A DNA stretch of 64,000 bases, taken from assembly GCA_965113315.1 (NCBI GenBank), contig OZ220365.1; one strand, written 5' to 3'. The notes under the pieces are model-generated. The model was not told the origin of the DNA, searched no databases, and was given only the letters and a program-made list of their open reading frames with translations. The position numbers and the translations under genes were made by a program. Positions 3,698 to 62,540 of the stretch are shown here, one piece after another. The stretch comes from Podarcis vaucheri. Taxonomy: Eukaryota. Each line of letters starts with the position of its first letter. Within the stretch, counting starts at the first letter, position 1.

Positions 3698-3841
3698 CTT
3701 GTGCCCAGTAATTTCTCGAGAGTTTCTATCCACAAGTCCCTCTGCAAGAAATGTTGTGGCATCGGCAATGTAGAACTGAGTTGGAAGCCTTCCAAACGAA
3801 GGAACAAAAGTGAACCTCAGAAATTCAGATTCTGAAGGAAC
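3698..3841 (-). CDS. MLIP: MLIP (muscular LMNA-interacting protein) exon-2 equivalent: VPSESEFLRFTFVPSFGRLPTQFYIADATTFLAEGLVDRNSREITGHK
   Basis: 144 nt, tgtag| ... |gtaggg, phase 0/0. FTFVP..RLPT motif matches recalled human MLIP (LIFTFVPTVRRLPTHTQLADTSKFL); synteny with LRRC1. Confidence 0.9.
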
Positions 3842-28047: not shown

Positions 28048-28404
28048 GATTAGATGATCCTCAGGGTCCCTTCCAACCCTACAATTCTATGTACACTACA
28101 ATTCACTCAGTATATCAGTTTTTATAAATCCCAGTCCAAGCACAATTCAAGGCATATTAATTGAGCATACCAGTAGATTTTGGGCTGCTGAAATTCAATT
28201 CCGTTGTGTTGGCTTAAATCAGAGATGGAGAACATCTGGCCTGCAAATGTAATCTAGCTCATCAAACCTCTGAATCTACTGCCAGCAAGCTCCCTAGGCT
28301 ATCTCATTCTACCTAGCTCTACCCTTTAAAAATATGAATAAATCTGAGCAGTTCACAAACCATATTCAATGCAACAGAAAAACTTTTTTTTCTAAAAAGA
28401 ATAA

Positions 28405-28410
28405 TTTATT
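28405..28410 (-). promoter_or_regulatory. Polyadenylation signal AATAAA overlapping the stop codon of the unassigned gene
   Basis: Minus strand reads CCT TAA TAA ATT. Confidence 0.5.
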
Positions 28411-28561
28411 AAGGGGGGTAAAAAGCATTGTTTAAACAGTCTGAATAGAGGTGGCCTTCTGAACTGTCCGTCTCCTCAGGCTCAAAGTCATCAGGGTCTT
28501 GCGCTAACTGGTCCGTGTCTTCGTCTGAAGTGGAAGGGCGTGTTAGGATGATTCGAGGTAT
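28409..28561 (-). CDS. Terminal exon of an unassigned gene: IPRIILTRPSTSDEDTDQLAQDPDDFEPEETDSSEGHLYSDCLNNAFYPP*
   Basis: Long polypyrimidine tract ending ccaag|, phase 0, 50 codons plus TAA; AATAAA overlaps the stop; acidic protein-like composition with retained CpGs. Confidence 0.7.
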   Translation of the reverse strand: MPRIILTRPSTSDEDTDQLAQDPDDFEPEETDSSEGHLYSDCLNNAFYPP

Positions 28562-28924
28562 CTTGGATACAGTAAAAGAATGCAGGGAAGGGGGTAGGGA
28601 AGAGAAGTGAATTGCACAAGAGAATCTAGAAGCTAACATTCGTTTGCTGCCAGGAACTCTCCTCTGACACAGATCTCCCTTGCAAATTTTAATGTCATGC
28701 ATTTTCCACATATTCTCTGAATGCTTAACTGTTCCCCAAATGTTGGATAGCTTAGGAATAGTCTATTCTCATATCCTTCTTCCTCATATTGGAAGGAGAG
28801 GCCCACCTACAGTGAAAATATGGCTGGGGTAGGACCAGAGAGGGTCTGTGCTCAGATTATATATGGGGTTTTGATGGATGGTTTTATATTGCTGGATTTT
28901 TTCATTCTATTTTTTAGAATGTAC

Positions 28925-29159
28925 GCTTTCAAGCACAATTCAAAGTGTTGGTGCTGACCTTTAAAGTCCTAAATGGCCTCGGCCCACCCCCTTTGTTCAG
29001 CCCAAACACAGGTCCAGCTCCGAGGGCCTTCTGGTGGTTTCCTCAGCACAAGAAGTGAAGTTACAGGGAACCAAGAAGATGGCCTTCATCCTGTGGAATG
29101 CCCTCCCATCAGATGTCAAGGAAATAAACAACTATATGATTTTTAGAAGACACCTGAAG
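28925..29159 (+). mobile_element. L2-like LINE fragment
   Basis: ttcaaagtgttggtgctgacctttaaagtcctaaatggcctcggcc...ctgtggaatgccctccc...: typical L2 ORF2 end. Confidence 0.65.
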
Positions 29160-29298
29160 CAGTGGCGTAGCGTGGGTTCTCAGCACCCGGGCCAAGGCAA
29201 GTAATTTGCGCCCCCTAACCCGTGGATTTTAGCACTCGAGTCTCTTCCGCGCCCCCCCCAGATGTTGCGCCAGGTGCACCCCCCACGCTACGCCACTG
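29160..29298. mobile_element. hAT MITE (CAGTGGCGTAG family), TSD not matched
   Basis: Same TIRs and body as 7507-7654. Confidence 0.8.
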
Positions 29299-29315
29299 CT
29301 CCCACCACAAGTCTT

Positions 29316-29453
29316 CAGGACAGCCATACGAAGGCTGGCGCGGGGAGAAGGTCTCTCCGCCCCACCGCCAGGCTTCGGAGCAGCCTTCCGAAGGCTGGCG
29401 GCGGGAGGAGGTCTCTCCGCCCCACCGCCAGGCTTCGGAGCAGCCTTCCGAAG
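29316..29453. repeat. GC-rich 60-bp tandem repeat, about 2.3 units
   Basis: cgaaggctggcg..ggag.aggtctctccgcccaccgccaggcttcggagcagccttc repeated at a 60-nt period. Confidence 0.85.
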
Positions 29454-29768
29454 CGGGGGTGGGAGAAGAAGCAGAATGTTAACTAATTCTAACTATTGGT
29501 AAATAGTATTCATTCTCCAAAGTCGATGATGCATTTGAAACCTTCTGACAAGAGCCCAGGCTAACACTGACATCTGGTGGGTTGTTTTTAATTCAGTACA
29601 AGAACCAGACAGATAACTTACCATTCATGGGTAGGTGGGTATAAATAAAAAGAACAGGGGTTTTTTTCTTCTGGGGAGGGGAGATTAAGCTATATTTTAC
29701 CAAAACATAATAGTAACACCTCTTCAGACACTATTAATGCATAAATATCTTCCTCCATCATTACTTAC

Positions 29769-29864
29769 TGTTATAACATGATTTACTGTCTGGAATGGTC
29801 CACTTTTGGAGGGCATCTCAACAGGGCCAGAATCAGGTGTGCTGGGTTCTGATATAATGGCATC
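29769..29864 (-). CDS. Unassigned gene exon: DAIISEPSTPDSGPVEMPSKSGPFQTVNHVIT
   Basis: tctttttctttttaag| ... ACA|gtaagt, 96 nt, phase 0/0, open. Confidence 0.68.
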
Positions 29865-30391
29865 CTTAAAAAGAAAAAGAAGAAAAATAGCCAATTCACT
29901 TTTCAGGCATTATTAAAACAGGTGAGGAAACCTGGAACCATGTTTATTCAACAAGTGAAAAAACCACCTCTCTCTCTCTCTCTCGGCCATTATTTACTCA
30001 AAGAATTTCTTACCCACTCTTCATTATTGAAAGTCACCTCAGAATAAGTTACAGTAGAAACGTTACAGACCAGAGACGTCATGAAAGGACAAAATAAATA
30101 GAGGTACAGCCCAGAACCTAACAACCAACAACTGAAGCATGCCACCAGATTCATCTAAAGGTCTGGGTGAAAAGTTAAGTCTTCGGCAGCACTGGACTTA
30201 GGTTCATAATATTATTATTAGAATTGGCATTTTAGTCACCTTTTTTGTTTACAAAAAGTAACCAAGAGCAACTTACATTTGAAAATTTTCTCACAGAAGA
30301 AGAGAGCAATTTTCTTTCAGTACAGGCCATCTGCTAAAATACACTGCTGAAAGAGGGTAGTCCACAACTAATGAGCTTAATTCAGTATTAA

Positions 30392-30569
30392 AGGTAAAGG
30401 TAAAGGTACCCCTGCCCGTACGGGCCAGTTGTGTCCGACTCTAGGGTTGTGCGCCCATCTCACTTAAGAGGCCGAGGGCCAGCGCTGTCCGGAGACACTT
30501 CCGGGTCCCGTGGCCAGCGTAACGAAGCTGCTCTGGCGAGCCGGCACCAGCACAGCACACAGAAATGCC
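30392..30569 (-). mobile_element. 5'-truncated Sauria SINE
   Basis: (ACCTTT)n tail; 13-bp TSD aattcagtattaa (30379-30391 / 30570-30582). Confidence 0.85.
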
Positions 30570-30666
30570 AATTCAGTATTAAGTGACCTTTAATAACCCA
30601 CCTAACCTACCTTGCAGTCCAGGAGAGCATTTCATAAAGTGAAATATGAAAGCAAAGACTCTATAC

Positions 30667-30744
30667 CTCCGCAACTTTGTCTTCAGATTGTACCCCAGCC
30701 AAGTCAAGTGGGCCATCTTTGGACACATGTGCTATTAAGATTCC
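30667..30744 (-). CDS. Unassigned gene candidate exon: GILIAHVSKDGPLDLAGVQSEDKVAE
   Basis: tttctccccag| ... GAG|gtatag, 78 nt, phase 0/0, open. Confidence 0.45.
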
Positions 30745-30923
30745 CTGGGGAGAAATCAGACATTTCAGACCTGGGAGTTTATTTTGGTAGCTATGCATTA
30801 CTAAGTGCACAGGGAGAAAAAAACTGCCTTAAAAATTATATGGACACCAGTTATTTTGGTGGGCACAACAACAAAAATTGAAGCCAGCCTTCCCGGGCTA
30901 GTAAGATCAAACCAAAAATTCAC

Positions 30924-31019
30924 TTGGGAGAGAAGAGGGCCAGAATCAGGTGTGCTGGGTTGGGAAGAGATTTGAGACCATGAACAGAAATGTTTTTGTG
31001 GCATGATGACACGGAGACC
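30924..31019 (-). CDS. Unassigned gene exon: GLRVIMPQKHFCSWSQISSQPSTPDSGPLLSQ
   Basis: ctccttgctcttggggcag| ... CAA|gtgaat, 96 nt, phase 0/0; shares an identical 26-nt block (PSTPDSGP) with the 29769-29864 exon. Confidence 0.55.
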
Positions 31020-31642
31020 CTGCCCCAAGAGCAAGGAGCAATTGTGAAATGAACAGGTGTGATACTTGCATTAGCATAGAAGCAAGTAGAGTCACCTTGA
31101 ATCAAGGTGGGAAATGATACTGGTAATGGCATTTCCAACATATGGGCTTTGTATACAAACAAACAAACAAATATTATTTTAGTCATCCCTCAAGAAGTGG
31201 CAATTCATGTGATTATTCTGAGGTTCAGCATAAGCTAATCTTTCTGCTTTTCTTATTAAGACAGGCTGCCATGTAATGACTTCCAATGAGACAATGGCAA
31301 GACAGGAGGACGGCTGTTTTGGTCTCTCACAACAAAGAATTAGTAGTTGGAAAATGTGTGAGTAATGAAATGCACCTCATCATTTTCTTTACATGAAGAT
31401 GAGCCCTTTCCACCAGCAATGCTAATACCAAGACTCCCCATTTGACTGCACACAGTAATCGTTATCTGGAAGAGAATTGTAGTTCATATTGAATAGGCAG
31501 TTAACAAGCAAACACAACACTTATTCATTATTATTAGACAAGCAACAAGTAATGAAACTCATGCATGACACACACACATGGAAAATGCTGTTTCGTTCAA
31601 AATGAACAGAGATCTCAGCAGTGCCTGTGCTGCAGTAATTAC

Positions 31643-31666
31643 CTTTTTAAACATGGTGGCACAGAA
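31643..31666 (-). CDS. Unassigned gene candidate microexon: FCATMFKK
   Basis: tattctttcag| ... AAG|gtaatt, 24 nt, open in phase 0/0. Confidence 0.4.
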
Positions 31667-32616
31667 CTGAAAGAATACTTATACAACATAAATGGCAGCC
31701 CCATTAAATAAATTCTAAGATATATTTGTTTATGACTCCTGGAAGACGGACGTTATTGAGGAAGTGTGAAGGAATTGGAGACAACCCCAGCAGATTCACC
31801 CAAACCCTCCAGCATTGACCCTCCCACCTGTTCTCCCTCCAGTTTCCTCCATCTTGTGATCTGGGATGCAATGCAATGGAACCTGTATCAACTGTCAACA
31901 CAAATTGCAATCTGACAGCTTAATTTTGGGATGGCATAATGAATGTAGGCAGTATATAATGGCAGTCTGGATTCAGAATTAGTCATCAGGGCTATGGATT
32001 TCAACGGTTCTGCATCAAGCAGGGCAGTCTGGATCCAACCCCATATTATTAGTTAGCCTCTTAATTTAACAATAAGTTAAAATGAATTATGCCATTAGGC
32101 AGTACAAAGTAGTATACCATTAGGTGCTCAAAACACAACATTTACACAAGGGTCCCTTTACCTTTACCTAATGTAAAAAAAAAAAAATCCTTTTAATGAT
32201 CAAAGCCAGCTTCAATTTTAAAAAATGCATTGTTTGACCAAGAAGCTTGCATAAGTTTAAAGCACAGATTTCTAGCACTCACGTCTCTAACAATTATTTT
32301 TAATAGTTTACATCTATTTTGTCTGTCTAGAAAATGTAATTAGTGAAAGCATAAGACAAGTCACAATTTCTGGGACGTTAATCCATGAATATTTTCCCTT
32401 AATTTAGTCAACAACACAATCCTCTACAGATCTACTCCAAATAAGTCCGAGTGGGGCTTGCTTCAAGGGATGTGGCTATAGGATGCAGTTTGAAATAAGC
32501 TTTGGGTTCTCAGCCTTCTTCTTCTTTACCTCCACTTAGAAAGAGTGCCTTTCCCTCACACACATTGCCTTGTATAAAAGTAACTGAGAGCGTGGGCCTA
32601 CTTTAGGGACCTAGGA

Positions 32617-32808
32617 AGGTAAAGGTAAAGGGACCCCTGACCATTAGGTCCAGTTATGGACGACTCTGGGGTTGCAGCACTCATCTCACTTTATTGGCCG
32701 AGGGAGCCGGCATACAGTTTCTGGGTCATGTGGCCAGCATGACTAAGCCACTTCTGGTGAACCAGAGCAGCGCACGGAAACGCCATTTACCTTCCCGCCG
32801 GAGCGGGA
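32617..32808 (-). mobile_element. 5'-truncated Sauria SINE
   Basis: aaggtaaaggtaaagggacccctgacc...ggtcatgtggccagcatgactaagcc...tttaccttcccgccggagcgg. Confidence 0.85.
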
Positions 32809-32897
32809 GCTAATGAATACAGACTGTTCCATTTATTAGCATTCCATTCTAGAAAGCAGAACCAAGAGGCAAATGCTTCTTCTTGCTCATGGGTTAC

Positions 32898-33152
32898 CTT
32901 CAAGGGTGACTGTGTTGTATCTGCAGCTCCTGGGATCTGCTCCTTGCTTTCTTTTGAAAACCTGTTGCCATCCGTCGGGAAGCTGTTTGCAGCTGCAACT
33001 GGAACCTGTGGTTTGCTGTTGGCCACTGGAAAGGGTTTTGACTTGGTTGCCACTTTTTGCCTTTCCTGTTGAAAAGTGACTCTAGCATTTCTTTGATCTC
33101 GAAGGTTGTCTCCAGAGTCAAAGAGACTCCCAGAGAATTTGGATATAGGCTC
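32898..33152 (-). CDS. Unassigned gene exon: EPISKFSGSLFDSGDNLRDQRNARVTFQQERQK...EQIPGAADTTQSPLK
   Basis: gtttgtttggttaaatttgcacag| ... AAG|gtaacc, 255 nt, phase 0/0, 85 open codons. Confidence 0.68.
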
Positions 33153-33930
33153 CTGTGCAAATTTAACCAAACAAACAAACCATGGCTTAGCTTTATGTGT
33201 GAACCAGACCACAGTAAATGTGAAAAGGCATGAAAGGCAGACAGAGCTGCTTGTGTAGCTTCACTCTCACTTCTGAAGTCACAGCCAGGATTAAATGTTT
33301 TCCACAAATCCAGAGAATCTCAGCTCAAGCTCTGAAATCAACAGTTTCTGACAGCAACTCAGATGTCTATGTGCAAATTTACATTGCTGTGAAAATCCCA
33401 AGATTATCAGTCAACAGTGATGATTGGCATTGTACAGTTCATCCTGTGAAAATCTGAAGAACAAAATTGTCTGTTCTGGACATACACTAGGGATAGTTGA
33501 TATATGTCAAAATAAACTAGTGAATTTTACTCAGCATAGACCCATTGAAATTATGAACATAAGTTAGGTCCATTAATTTCAATGTGTAAAATTTAGATGA
33601 ATACCACCCAGTTTCTCTCACACACCAAAGCCTCTATTTCCTGTTCCAGAATCTCTTGTTCTTTTGCCCTTCAAACTTCTCATTATTTTTTCAGCTACTT
33701 CTGATATGCAGCAATCATGTAAATGAGTATTGGACTGATTTCAATGAGTTCAAGGGCTATCATACTGCTAGAAAATCTGTGAATGTTATTACTTCCTAAT
33801 AACATTCAGAATCTACAACATTAGCCAGCATAATTTCTTTTTTCTCTCCTTGGTTCTTTTCTTTGATTTCCTCAAGCCTGAATATGGCTGCAGGAAGGTG
33901 CAGCATATCTTTTGCTGGATTGGCACTTAC

Positions 33931-34137
33931 ATCCTCATCAGGATCCTCCAGCTCCTCGGCTTCTTGTTCGGGGCTGATCCGCCCTTCCTTCCGTTTTTCA
34001 TTGGACGAGTTGAATTTGTACAGACTGCACCCTTGGACATTCTCCTTTCCCTTCAAAGAGCCCCAGCGAGAACCCTGGGAATTCCAGTTATGACTGCCAT
34101 ATAGCTTAGGAGACTTGGGAAGCCATTTGACAGAGTC
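33931..34137 (-). CDS. Unassigned gene exon: DSVKWLPKSPKLYGSHNWNSQGSRWGSLKGKENVQGCSLYKFNSSNEKRKEGRISPEQEAEELEDPDED
   Basis: cttttgctcttccatgcag| ... GAT|gtaagt, 207 nt, phase 0/0, 69 open codons. Confidence 0.68.
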
Positions 34138-35148
34138 CTGCATGGAAGAGCAAAAGCACAAGAGTTTAATTCAGCACAGAGTTCAGGCACTCGAAAAGGA
34201 TGCCTGCTAATTGGACACAAGCTAGAATAGATGACTTCAAGTTTGCCAGGCATCCAGTCAAGCACAGGCTTATCGGGTGTGTTGCGAAGTCAGCCAGTCA
34301 TTGGCTGTGGGAAATGAATGGAGTCACTATCTGATGACAAAAAGGTTGGACAATAGTGAGCAACTTAGAAGGTGCTGTTGCCTGCCAGAACAATAGGAGG
34401 CAGGGGAACACACACAGACATGCACTTTCATCAGTAGCTATTGGTAAACTCTTATTTTGTTGGACAGAGAGATGCCATGCAGAGATGAGACTATCCAGTA
34501 ACTTGGGCTATCTGCCCCATCTCAAGGCTTGTTTACCCTACCCTTCCCATGTGCTCTATCCCTCCCCATCATTCACACAATGCATAAATGGAAACATAAG
34601 TTTGGATGTTTCCATCCACAATATGTGAAAAGGGGGTGCGGGTTGCAGTGGCATGGATGAGCTCAAGGGAACGACAACACACCTTCCCAGATGCAGACAT
34701 GTCAGTCTTCCTGTCCCCAAGAAGACACCTGATCTTAAAACCAATCTACCAAATTTGTCAAAGTTTCATCTTAAATGTTTTGATACTTCCGGCAATCAAA
34801 CTGTACAAGAGCTATGGACTTTGCAACAAAGCTCAGCTTCTTCACAAACCTCTTGAACCTTTATTAGCCTTACAGGACGGATTAGATCAAAAAGAGTTGA
34901 AAAAGTAACTTCTAAGTTACTTTTGCCTCTGATGACAAATGTGCTTGGAAATTCATAAGAAACACCTGCTATCAAAGGGCTTATCAACTATGGTAGACTT
35001 AATAGTCTATTGGGCCATATCTGGTGCCATTCGTGATGACTGCCTAAAACATCCAGATGATAAAGACTAAGGTAGAACAACATATTTCAGGAGCATTCAT
35101 TTGTTTCTCCTCCTATAAAGCTCTGTACACCTTGGACCCATAACTTAC

Positions 35149-35184
35149 GCCTCATTTTGTCTTCCTGAGACTGAGTTAAGACCT
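35149..35184 (-). CDS. Unassigned gene candidate small exon (36 nt)
   Basis: ttgttaatacag| ... |gtaagt; open in phase 2/2 (GLNSVSGRQNE) or 1/1 (VLTQSQEDKMR). Confidence 0.4.
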
Positions 35185-37658
35185 CTGTATTAACAATACA
35201 CGAGCCTTGTTCAAACAGCAGAGTGATAACTTCAGCATGTTACTTTTCTTTCTTTTTATCCACTCATAGTTCCTGGGAATTGGTGGGCTATAGAAAAAAT
35301 CTAGGATATTTGGTAACTACAAGCAGTATTTAGGTGGTCTTAATCTCTATAAATAAGGCAAACACTCAGGAAATCCCCAGACTTGTGACAAGACAAAAAA
35401 AATGGCAAGCATATTCAAAGCAACAGCCCTTCCACTATCTTCACTGAGGACTGGATCAGATCATTAAATATCTTTAATTTATGCAAATTACATATTTATG
35501 CAACCTCTACACACAAACACATATGTACACATATGGGATGTGTAATTGTGTGATACACAAACAATGAATGGAACTTCCAGCAATGTGTCTGTTATGGCAC
35601 CATCTAGTGGATTCTGTTGCAAGAAACAAACGCAACAGATTTCCCTAGTTCATCTCCAATTGCTGGATCCTATGAAACATTTATTATCTCTATAGCCACA
35701 GACAGTGGCATGGTGAAACACTTCCCACTAGGTAAGCAGACTCTAGTGCGAGTCAAAGGAATCTGTCTCTAACCAACGTCTTCTAAAGAAAATGGACTTT
35801 TTGCCAACAGCAATTCAAGCCAAATGGGCTGACATAACAGAACACTTAGTTTAAACACACAAAATACGTAAAAGGGGATTTGTGGGTTATTTTTCTGAAT
35901 ACCTCTTTAAGTGTTTAAAAGATTCACACACTTCACGAAAAATCTGGTTCTTCAGCAGCTCTGTTCAGTACTAAGTAATTTACACTTCTAACGGCATTCA
36001 CACAACTGACAGCCATGCAAGATCTTTGATGGTCCTGCTCTGGATTATTATATTTTCAGTAATGGTTGATTGACAGTAATAAATATTTTGATTGATTATT
36101 ATGAGATATAGCTGAGAGAGGAACAGGGTTGGGGCAGAGACATGCAAAATCTTTTGGCAATCCCTGTGTTATGGTATCAGATTGTGTCAGGATAAGAGGA
36201 AATGTTTGATCAAGGAGTGGCGCTCAAGCAACTTTGGAGCTGGTTGAAGTATTCCATTTATGAATTAAACTCATGTTTGAGTTGGGAAAAACCAAATGAG
36301 ATGCTCCAAAATGGCACCCGTGAAGACCACAATACACAGCTGTTCAACCACAATACACAGCTGTTTCAGAAACCTATGCTGGTTACAAAGGAAGGAAATA
36401 CCGTCAGGCCCACAACTATGATTTAGCAGGTGTAGCCTAATTTCTCCACCGCCACCATCCTCACCAGCAAGGCAGGAGCCCGGACAGACAGGGTGCCTAA
36501 GCATGCCTGCTAACAGAACAAGAAGAGACTCAAAGGAACCAGTAACTACAAGCCTAAAGTGAGCTGTTGTTCAGGACCTAACCAGAACACACAGTCATCT
36601 CACAGCGGTAACAGAAATCACCATGATGAGAAACCAGGAAGCAAGCAAGCCAGCTGTTGAGCCAGCCAAGCACAGTTTTCTTTCCCCTTACACAAGGCGA
36701 GGGAGAAGCCCTGCGATGGGTAGACACTGAGCCACAGGATCCTTATCCTTCATCAGGGCAAACGGTTCCCCTTTGCTTCCCAGTGCAGAGAAACAAGCCA
36801 TCCGGCAAGCAAGCCGTGTTCCACAGTGTGCATGGAACCAATTGGCAAGCCCATGATCTGTATCATCAGACCAACTGGTAAAGAAAGTATGTTGCTATAC
36901 CAGCTTAGAGATCGATGGAAGCAGGAGGTGGGTAAGGAGCCTCCTCATTGCTGCCGAGACAAACACAGATGATCAGCGCCAAGTGCTTTAACTAAACACT
37001 GTGGAAAGTTATTTAGCTAACAGGTATTAGGGAGAGACTGCAACCAAGACTGATGGGATCCTTCAGACATTACAGCAGGGACAGGGAACATTTTTCAGCC
37101 TGAGGGCGACATTCCCTTCTGGGAAACATTCTGAGGGTCACATTCCAGTGATGAGGGGGTGGGCAGGTGGAAAAGTGTGTGGAGCAGCTGATGGCTATTT
37201 TACCTTTGTGCAGTAGTGTCATTTCTGCACACACACACACACACGTGCACACACACATCTAGACAAGCAAGAGGCATAATCAGATGCACATTCCAGCCAA
37301 GAAGAAAATCTAGGTTGCGAAGCAGGGAGCAAGTTCGAAGCACCAGATAAAGGCTTGAAGGGCTGCATTTGACTCTCAGGCCTGAGGTCCCCCACAGATG
37401 TGCTACAGTCATGGAAGCACAAAATGAGGACTGTAATCAACAACCTGATCTCCTGGGGTTCTCAACCGTGCAGGGAGCCTCCGTGTGTAGCAAAGGCTCC
37501 CTGCTGTAGAAGCTACAGAAGAGCACAAGCAAGCTAGAGGGAGCCATGCAGCATGAGGAGCAGAAATAAGGCACACCCTTGCAACTCCTTCAGGGCTGTG
37601 AATCCCAAAGAGGGCTTCAGGGTAGGAAGCCGAGTCGGGCTCTTAGGTCCATCTAGTC

Positions 37659-37796
37659 CAGCCTTTCTCAACCTGTGGGTCCCCAGATGTTGTTGAACTA
37701 CAACTCCCATCACCCCTAGCTAGCAAGGCCAGAGCTCAGGGATGATGGGAGTTGTAGTCCAACAACATCTGGGGACCCACAGGTTGAGAACCGCTG
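37659..37796. mobile_element. Palindromic hAT MITE (ccagatgttgttggactacaactcccatc family)
   Basis: Near-perfect inverted arms; TSD atctagtc/atctagtt; degenerate relatives near 1070, 9870, 11160, 42610, 54770 and 62085. Confidence 0.85.
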
Positions 37797-39033
37797 ATCT
37801 AGTTCAATATCATCTACACTGGCTGACAGCAACTCTCCAGAGCTTCCAGTAGGGTTCTTTCCAAGCCCAGCGTGGGGCTTCTGGGGACTGGACCGAGGAC
37901 CTTCTGCGTGTGCTCTGCCCACTGAGCTTTCTTTCTATAAAGGCCAGATTGTCACCTCAATGTACATCAGCAGAGCCGTACCTTGAAGCAGACAATGGAA
38001 TCTGCAAGCAGAGGGTGAGAGCTTAGTGCATCAGATGGCAGAGTAGGACAAGGAACCACGAGCAAAAGCGTCAGCCATCCAATACCATTGGCGCATGATT
38101 TTAACACGATTTTAAGCAAGAGATATGCAAGAGGGGGACAGGGTCCCACAAGCTCAACCCACACTCCCGCTGACGTGATGTGGGGGGGGGGGGAAATGAG
38201 TGGCGTTGGGCAGCTGCCAAAAGTGCAAGGAGGTAGCTATAATGTCTCTCACCCTTTCATGTCCTGGTCTGGTTCGCCCCTCAAACAAACACCCATAGAA
38301 TATCAAATTTGAAGCCCCATTTGGCCTCCCCGCCCCCCTGCTTTAATGACAAAGAAAGAATCAGGACAGGGCGGGTGCAGCTACCTCATATCCCACTTTT
38401 GTCAGAGCGTGTAAGAGATAAATGCTACTTCTCTCAGTTAGAAAAAACAAAAAAGCAGTCCAAAAGGAGCTTGCCTCGTCCAGTGCCACCACCATCATGC
38501 AAACAAGCACACTTTATTTCAACAACTTTATTAGCCATCATAAAAAAAATCATTGAGCTTTAAATATTATTTCTAGTGCTATTCTACTACTATGATAATT
38601 TATTTACAAACACCTAGTTATTAGACATTAACATTTTTACAAGAACAACCAGGGAACTCTGCATCAGGAACTCCTTCAGATCTTGGTCTGCAAAGAAATT
38701 AAAATGGGAAGAATTAGGATAGCAAAAAGCGAGGAATGCTGGCACAAGCCCCAAAACTGCACAGTATGGAGCTAATAAGCACACCAGAATAGCTGTACTA
38801 AAAGACAGTTTTAAGTGCATCTTGAAGAGAAGTAGCTACAGAAATGTTGGGGGTACACTCTGGCCCAAATAGAAAAAAAAAGTACTGAAAATATAGTCAA
38901 AGAGAAAATGAACCAAGCAAGGCAGAGTTACACCATCCTGTTCCTCTGTTACATCATGGATGACATGGCATCAGTGGCCTAAATATTAATACTATATAAG
39001 CAAAGGCAAAAGGGGCAGAAGAGTTGTTCTAAC

Positions 39034-39099
39034 CTGCAAATGCTGTCTTCACATCTGTCTTCACATCAATAGTTTCCTCAGCCCCGTCCTGTAACAGAT
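39034..39099 (-). CDS. Unassigned gene candidate exon: (D)LLQDGAEETIDVKTDVKTAFA
   Basis: ccctttcag| ... CAG|gttaga, 66 nt, phase 1/1; contains an in-frame 12-nt tandem duplication (DVKT x2). Confidence 0.5.
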
Positions 39100-39378
39100 C
39101 TGAAAGGGTATTACCATTTTTCAGTGGCAGGACCACACAGTGCACTACATCTTGCCAGCATACACTCAGTCTCAGTACACAGTGGCCAATCAGATGCGTC
39201 CAGAAAGCCCACAGATAGGGCATTAATGCAATAGCCCTCCTGGGTGGAACAACCTTGTTTAGATGCTATGCCAACCCAAGTTTTGCGGTGATCAATAATA
39301 TTCTTGCACATTGTTTATGCTGCATTGGCCATGCCCTTGTTCGCTACTGAATCAGGCTGCAATCTGAACACCACTTAC

Positions 39379-39437
39379 CTGGGAGTAAGTTTAATTGATT
39401 TCTGGGAGGCATAGCTAGGATTGTTATCATGCCACAG
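39379..39437 (-). CDS. Unassigned gene candidate exon: CGMITILAMPPRNQLNLLP
   Basis: ttcttctcccttggctaattag| ... CAG|gtaagt, 59 nt; the phase 2/1 reading links the neighbouring exons. Confidence 0.5.
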
Positions 39438-39729
39438 CTAATTAGCCAAGGGAGAAGAAAAGTGTTCTTGAAGAATGAAAACTGGTTACTGAAACTTTTA
39501 TGTGCATGCCCAGCTCTTCTCATCCCTCTCCAAATAGCTGACTGGGAAAGAGTTAAGGAAAAGGAGTGAACAGGGAAAAGAGTGAACAAACTGCTCATGC
39601 ATTGCATAAAGTCTCAAACTAGGCAAAGCATACCACACAGATTGCTTCCCTCCTATCGAAAAAGAGAGCAAGTGGGAAAAGAGGGAAAGATAAAGAGTAT
39701 TTTATTAGACATAAAGAAAAGGAACCTAC

Positions 39730-39786
39730 CCTGCTGCTCTGGTTCCTTCCTCCTCTGTCACTGGAAATATTAGCTTCCTCTCAAAG
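39730..39786 (-). CDS. Unassigned gene candidate exon: FERKLIFPVTEEEGTRAA(G)
   Basis: cttcctctccag| ... AGG|gtaggt, 57 nt; only phase 2/2 is open, matching the next exon. Confidence 0.5.
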
Positions 39787-43159: not shown

Positions 43160-43165
43160 TTTATT
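43160..43165 (-). promoter_or_regulatory. Probable LRRC1 polyadenylation signal (AATAAA), giving a 3' UTR of about 1.2 kb
   Basis: tttatt on the plus strand at the end of an AT-rich, repeat-free stretch downstream of the stop codon. Confidence 0.55.
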
Positions 43166-44339: not shown

Positions 44340-44498
<159 letters not shown>

Positions 44499-46962: not shown

Positions 46963-47229
<267 letters not shown>

Positions 47230-62400: not shown

Positions 62401-62540
62401 TGCTGTCCTTTACCAGCATTAGTCCAAAGCAGAAATTTCTTTGAGAAAGAAATTGTTCCATTGGAAATGTTTGGACTTGATTAAATTCTTGTTGCTCTAT
62501 TTTATTATTTTATTTTATTTTTTTAAAAAAACACTTTTCA

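Follow-up and report, generated by a model that had tools for sequence, protein, structure and literature searches.

In the lizard Podarcis vaucheri, the interval between LRRC1 and MLIP holds a row of open segments on the minus strand, and the question raised by this locus is whether they belong to a gene of their own. The DNA analysed here is a stretch of 64,000 nucleotides (nt) from contig OZ220365.1 of assembly GCA_965113315.1 (hereafter the window). A first-pass annotation of it had described an unassigned gene of 15 exons at positions 28405–39786, restricted to some lineage or lost in mammals. The large 3' exons of that model are what it had claimed: they code for protein, are spliced, and end in a stop and a poly(A) signal of their own. 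They are not unassigned, for annotations of the closest relatives give them to long LRRC1 isoforms, of which they form the 3' part. We consider it quite likely that 28409–34137 comprises the coding exons by which a long form of LRRC1 is extended downstream; the added part includes a segment resembling the first PDZ domain of Scribble.

The RNA evidence comes from Logan contigs of four public runs (three organisms, four studies) placed on positions 28300–34200. The candidates were 18 small runs, each containing 8–20% of the sampled words of the stretch, of which the claimed exons make up about 16%. The runs are presumed, as a guess, to be RNA and contain unspliced sequence as well; splicing is shown by the joints, all of which have minus-strand GT..AG borders. 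Joint 33931^33152 was present in three runs (X1, X2 and X8), 32898^31465 in two, 31376^30744 in all four, and 30667^29864 and 29769^28561 in three each. A further joint, 32898^30744, found in two runs, skips the 90-nt cassette exon 31376–31465 that the other joints define, so the RNA shows both inclusion and skipping of this exon, which the earlier exon chain had missed. Splicing is thus seen for all five downstream introns, and for the cassette-skipping form in addition, in runs from three organisms. Junctions 33931^33152 and 29769^28561 had been named beforehand as checks, and both were recovered. Exons 33931–34137, 32898–33152, 30667–30744, 29769–29864 and 28409–28561 are therefore real, and the last of them ends as had been proposed, the stop TAA at 28411–28409 overlapping an AATAAA at 28410–28405. 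That exons 28409–34137 might be a chance chain of open AG/GT segments and not a gene is a practically negligible explanation, refuted by spliced contigs in three organisms and by protein conservation to ray-finned fish and sharks.

Chance is the best reading of the eight small 5' segments at 34850–39786, and of these only. All 15 segments listed in the first-pass annotation are indeed bounded by AG and GT and, when joined, give one stop-free frame. No orthologous protein maps to the eight, however, and the 5.7 kilobases upstream of 34137 contain about 1025 AG/GT-bounded stop-free segments of 19–70 nt against 959 ± 57 after shuffling, so that a phase-compatible 5' chain is expected by chance. 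The conservation of orthologues begins exactly at acceptor 34137. Two of the supposed phase-0 exons, 31643–31666 and 30924–31019, also have to be given up, being absent from the joints shown: position 32898 is joined to 31465 or 30744. The second of these segments bears an 11-nt deletion in one related organism (the run of organism C). At 30933–30965 the core of exon 29769–29864, which codes for EPSTPDSGP, recurs in a near-identical copy (28/29 nt), intronic and flanked by AG and GT, and the segment is probably a decayed duplicate of that exon. Elsewhere in the introns, segments 28891–29284, 30270–30663 and 32437–32830 are copies of a transcribed interspersed repeat of very high abundance: in most of the four runs, if not all, their contig depth lies between thousands and hundreds of thousands, and they show false joints among themselves (e.g., 29306 to 32619).

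The gene to which the supported exons belong is suggested by their position and by database models. The exons coding for the leucine-rich repeats (LRRs) and the LAPSD of LRRC1 lie on the minus strand at 62535–47023, upstream of 34137, with exon 44379–44498 in between. Both LRRC1 donors and acceptor 34137 are of phase 0 and match those of annotated orthologues. When a tinamou LRRC1 model served as the query of a length-shifted search, the downstream module was found in 34 proteins bearing LRRC1 as their name or description, among them P. raffonei X2 (734 amino acids), the P. muralis Ensembl protein (881 amino acids), Anolis X1 (766 amino acids, with the cassette), and models from a tegu, turtles, a crocodile, many birds and three sharks. 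In the three shark models the LRRs are accompanied by a full PDZ domain (precomputed Pfam), and the combination that characterises LAP proteins, LRRs, LAPSD and at least one PDZ domain in one polypeptide, is seen in them, while the PDZ of the lizard is partial. Two types of junction occur in the models. In the first, exon 47023–47160 is joined straight to 34137 (beginning with DSVKW), as in P. raffonei X2; in the second, a donor inside the classical last exon is used and the protein reads DSNKNE followed by DSVKW. The Podarcis models P0170 and P0166 map exon by exon on the window with 88–100% identity, passing from 47023 or 44379 to 34137. The classical last exon of LRRC1 (44498–44340) is present too, with its ...RVTTSV end at 44340–44378. 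Candidate poly(A) signals for this short form stand at 43165, 42182, 41569, 40928 and 40044.

Several observations weigh against the assignment to LRRC1. The donor at 44378, GTCAAT, is weak by comparison with the donor consensus, which would fit regulated or inefficient use. No contig crosses 47023^34137 or 44379^34137, the RNA alignment having spanned 28300–34200 only. A low-depth X2 contig continues unspliced over acceptor 34137 for about 490 nt farther upstream; it could represent an internal first exon or a retained intron. In P. muralis, RefSeq gives these exons to a gene of their own, LOC144327299, with a coding sequence from the ATG at 34143, and separate models likewise exist in many birds, turtles, crocodilians and marsupials. 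The database models of the long LRRC1, moreover, are automatic predictions.

These observations raise the alternative of an independent small gene of the LOC144327299 type, with a promoter just upstream of 34143 and a disordered product of 264 or 294 residues, the LRRC1 fusions being read-through artefacts of gene prediction. The separate models and the unspliced contig would be accommodated by it, as would the teleost stand-alone PDZ proteins, the in-frame ATG at 34143–34141 with a stop just upstream, and a bird transcript contig (P0143) that has a non-LRRC1 leader before DSIKW. We nevertheless regard it as unlikely. Stand-alone models of different species begin with unrelated N-termini: orthologues vary upstream of DS[VI]KW and are conserved from DS[VI]KW on, and an onset of conservation at the splice acceptor fits an internal exon. 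There is no CpG island upstream of 34137, and the 34 LRRC1 models, from sharks to birds, share the phase-0 junction. In addition, two contigs, one of X1 and one of X8, terminate precisely at 34137/8, the pattern expected for a branch point. We return to the long LRRC1 isoform. Its LRRC1 junction is annotated in sister species, and on the strength of those models we infer its use in P. vaucheri. As an annotation in RefSeq and Ensembl, the long form is already known; our literature searches on LRRC1 with PDZ isoforms found no paper describing it. The novelty of the supposed gene accordingly ends in a match to a well-known one, LRRC1, with a Scribble-like PDZ. The features of the locus are collected in Table 1; an Rfam search of the whole window gave zero matches, and a Logan peptide search with exon 33931–34137 gave genomic or intron-reading bird contigs only and no lacertid transcript over the acceptor.

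Table 1. Coordinates of LRRC1 exons, intervening segments and the nearest conserved MLIP exon in the window, with the basis of each entry.
Feature	Positions	Strand	Basis
LRRC1 exon with phase-0 donor	47023..47160	-	tblastn of P0170 and P0166, 100% identity
LRRC1 exon ending DSNKNE, internal donor 44378	44379..44498	-	P0166 residues 580-619, 100%, continuing into 34137
Read-through tail and stop, short LRRC1/LANO end	44340..44378	-	translation
First supported exon, DSVKWLPKSPK...EELEDPDED	33931..34137	-	joint 33931^33152; P0053 maps 34143-33931
Linker exon, EPISKFSGSLFD...PLK	32898..33152	-	joints on both sides; 11 database matches
Cassette exon, ITITVCSQMGSLGISIAGGKGSSSCKENDE, PDZ start	31376..31465	-	inclusion and skipping joints; translation; 90% identical to crane
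Exon GILIAHVSKDGPLDLAGVQSEDKVAE, PDZ middle, domain ends here	30667..30744	-	joints; weak Pfam PDZ_6 match alone
Ser/Pro exon, DAIISEPSTPDSGP...FQTVNHVIT	29769..29864	-	joints 30667^29864 and 29769^28561; P0076, P0059
Terminal coding exon, IPRIILTRPSTSDEDTDQL...AFYPP	28405..28561	-	joint 29769^28561; motif invariant in 16 species
Unused segment within intron	30924..31019	-	in none of the joints shown
Eight small 5' segments, unsupported, best taken as chance AG/GT open stretches	34850..39786	-	protein mapping and shuffle comparison
MLIP exon, first conserved one of the window, VPSESEFLRFTFVPSFGRLPTQ...	3746..3841	-	phase 0 after AG

The next gene downstream offers another way of reading the same exons, namely as an upstream 5' module of MLIP, with terminal exon 28409–28561 as a minor alternative end. 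Older MLIP models of birds (P0059, P0076, P0088 and P0169) join the exons after ...VNHVIT to an MLIP exon, a model from the sawfish joins a full PDZ with MLIP-like motifs, and a joint 29769^3841 would be in frame, exon 3746–3841 being of phase 0. Against this, three runs of the lizard group splice 29769 to the terminal exon, no joint into MLIP shows up within the aligned positions 28300–34200, newer RefSeq models place the exons in LRRC1 or in a LOC, and Pfam MLIP (PF15274) matches none of exons 28409–34137. We therefore find this explanation very improbable, although some read-through from 29769 into MLIP may occur.

The sawfish model itself (Pristis pectinata, P0121) carries a full PDZ domain of the LRRC1-module type together with two MLIP signature motifs. 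Compared with flycatcher MLIP, it matches at KPLAFTFVPTIRRLP (E 6e-9) and LRQQSEELYATIEQVLADPL (E 8e-7), the lizard MLIP exons to be compared lying at 3746–3841 and 1395–1832; its Pfam MLIP score of 24.2 bits is just below the cut-off of 27. In the literature, MLIP has LRRC1 and TINAG as its flanking genes and is described as an innovation of amniotes (PMC3103349), and the motifs in the sawfish protein argue against the latter. The sawfish motifs, like the conservation of the half-PDZ segment considered below, are read from automatic gene models.

The PDZ-type segment of the long isoform is encoded by the cassette, ITITVCSQMGSLGISIAGGKGSSSCKENDE, and the following exon, GILIAHVSKDGPLDLAGVQSEDKVAE, which in translation correspond to the first strands and the first helix of a PDZ domain, about 55 residues in total. 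Domain searches were made with the window exons singly and with database orthologues (P0007, P0039, P0053, P0061, P0170 and others) as stand-ins. Single window exons gave blank results in Pfam or only PDZ_6 at E 0.11 (exon 30667–30744), because they are too short alone. Exon 32898–33152, searched against 1.8 billion representative proteins, gave 11 matches with an E-value of at most 0.001, the best at 1.7e-25. A crane protein named "protein scribble homolog" (XP_054675207.1, P0007, 332 amino acids) has the same exon chain as the RNA-supported one. Its PDZ segment covers positions 9–51 only of the 81 of the Pfam PDZ profile and matches human Scribble PDZ1 structures with E 7e-15; sauropsid orthologues cover the same positions at 18–27 bits. 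Lizard and crane show 90% identity in the cassette, whereas the figure for exon 32898–33152 is 48%.

The full PDZ of the paddlefish orthologue (P0061) scores 104–112 bits against Scribble PDZ1 and 80 against fly Scribble; other PDZ chains of Scribble reach 51–65 and Erbin reaches 52. By these alignments the PDZ segment is nearer to Scribble PDZ1 than to other PDZ domains. In the Protein Data Bank, a 96-residue PDZ chain (8boj, 8buw and 8bv7) is deposited as "Leucine-rich repeat-containing protein 1"; it scores 34.5 and 66.7 bits against LRRC1-type PDZ sequences, well under Scribble PDZ1. A complete PDZ domain (Pfam PF00595, about 80 residues with the second helix and the last strand) is found by Pfam in the paddlefish, chimaera and sawfish proteins, and precomputed Pfam marks one in the other matches from fish; the lizard and the other sauropsids do not have it. 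The alignment shows amniotes to be without the second PDZ half and the linker that follows it, and a search of the lizard introns for a relic of that half gave nothing above noise. AlphaFold2, run on the Sceloporus orthologue with an alignment of 44 sequences, returned predicted local distance difference test values of 40–49 (mean 47) and no strands, the half-PDZ included. The half-PDZ of amniotes is conserved, yet the prediction is that it would not fold. The first-pass view of a largely disordered product agrees with the disorder that AlphaFold2 gives throughout this orthologue.

The tail carries the block IPRIILT-x-PSTSDED, invariant in 16 of 16 aligned species from teleost to amniote; SPEQEAEE is nearly invariant in the same alignment. 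PRIILT fits the calcineurin PxIxIT pattern P-x-[IVLF]-x-[IVLF]-[TSHEDQNKR] and lies within predicted disorder. The run of IILT and then RPSTSDEDTD also fits the pattern of a phospho-regulated SUMO-interacting motif (SIM), a hydrophobic core of 3–4 residues followed by Ser and acidic CK2-type sites. Literature searches on PRIILT and on MLIP with calcineurin, SUMO-interacting and PxIxIT yielded nothing relevant. MLIP exon 1395–1832, on the minus strand, encodes LFKAEFVFITDSDEDK, in which a hydrophobic strand likewise precedes Ser and acidic residues, a pattern shared with IPRIILTRPSTSDED in the tail of the long LRRC1 isoform. Similar docking motifs may thus be supplied whichever 3' path is taken, or the likeness may be a coincidence.

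From these data we propose that LRRC1 would have two alternative 3' ends. If donor 44378 is left unused, translation would run through 12 more codons to a stop and yield the short, LANO-type protein without a PDZ. Its ...TSV end we take to be a C-terminus of the class I PDZ-ligand type. If donor 44378, or the donor of exon 47023–47160, is joined in phase 0 to 34137, the long form would gain about 260–295 residues, and the ...TSV end would be replaced by the long tail. The added part would consist of two linker exons, the optional 30-residue cassette and a 26-residue exon, these last two supplying the first half only of a Scribble-PDZ1-type domain, followed by the Ser/Pro exon and the terminal exon with IPRIILT-x-PSTSDED and an acidic tail. 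Such a part may act as a disordered tail with short docking motifs rather than as a working PDZ domain, the putative docking motif being a calcineurin PxIxIT-like or a phospho-SIM-like strand beside CK2-type serines. Alongside the long isoform there may also be a stand-alone transcript whose start lies just upstream of 34143.

The idea of a lineage-restricted gene does not hold. Homologues of 180–580 amino acids occur in birds, turtles, crocodilians, squamates, two marsupials, a frog and the coelacanth, and among fish in gar, paddlefish, many teleosts, sharks and rays; P. muralis LOC144327299 (P0053) is 88–99% identical to the window exon by exon. The sequences compared indicate that the downstream module is at least as old as the jawed vertebrates. 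Length-limited protein searches, with mammalian genome DNA outside their scope, revealed no placental homologue, and the module is apparently absent from placental mammals. Of the first-pass interpretation this part stands; the mammalian matches were two marsupial LOC models only.

For annotation, the outcome is that a supposed new gene is removed and a corrected exon set takes its place, with a PDZ-coding cassette and a weak donor switching between short and long LRRC1. For the polarity literature, in which LRRC1/LANO is a LAP protein without a PDZ, it means that outside placentals, by the database models and by the spliced RNA of lacertids, the locus still encodes a Scribble-PDZ1-type segment and a deeply conserved tail motif. 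The long end of LRRC1 has seemingly remained unstudied. Workers on LAP proteins or on MLIP may take an interest in two points, the strong conservation of a half domain over sauropsids and the MLIP-like motifs of the sawfish model. We would go further only tentatively and suggest that LRRC1, the PDZ module and MLIP might descend from one transcription unit of a Scribble paralogue in ancestral jawed vertebrates. "LANO without PDZ" and "MLIP as an amniote innovation" would then be artefacts of placental sampling, and the half-PDZ and the IPRIILT-x-PSTSDED tail would be functional docking elements (e.g., for calcineurin or SUMO) linking a polarity scaffold to MLIP/lamin biology.

The long isoform can finally be set beside the systems already described. 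LANO/LRRC1 has been described as a Scribble (SCRIB) paralogue without PDZ domains (PMC6234904). The lizard gene is the same gene on the same strand, with the LRR/LAPSD exons upstream and the classical ...RVTTSV end present, whereas the long isoform of non-mammals is extended by a linker, by a segment of PDZ1 type and by a conserved tail. Scribble PDZ1 is the closest solved domain and has a nearly identical GLGISIAGGKGS loop, yet the LRRC1 module has one PDZ where Scribble has four, and in amniotes this domain is without its second half. LOC144327299 and the models of birds, turtles and marsupials called "protein scribble homolog" or "uncharacterized LOC" have the identical exon chain, but they begin at the ATG beside the acceptor or with unrelated leaders and have no link to LRRC1. 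MLIP, in turn, follows downstream as the neighbouring gene, shares the strand, is phase-compatible, and is fused to the module in some bird models and in that of the sawfish; the module, by contrast, is without similarity to Pfam MLIP, and the transcripts observed in the lizard group end at 28409–28561.

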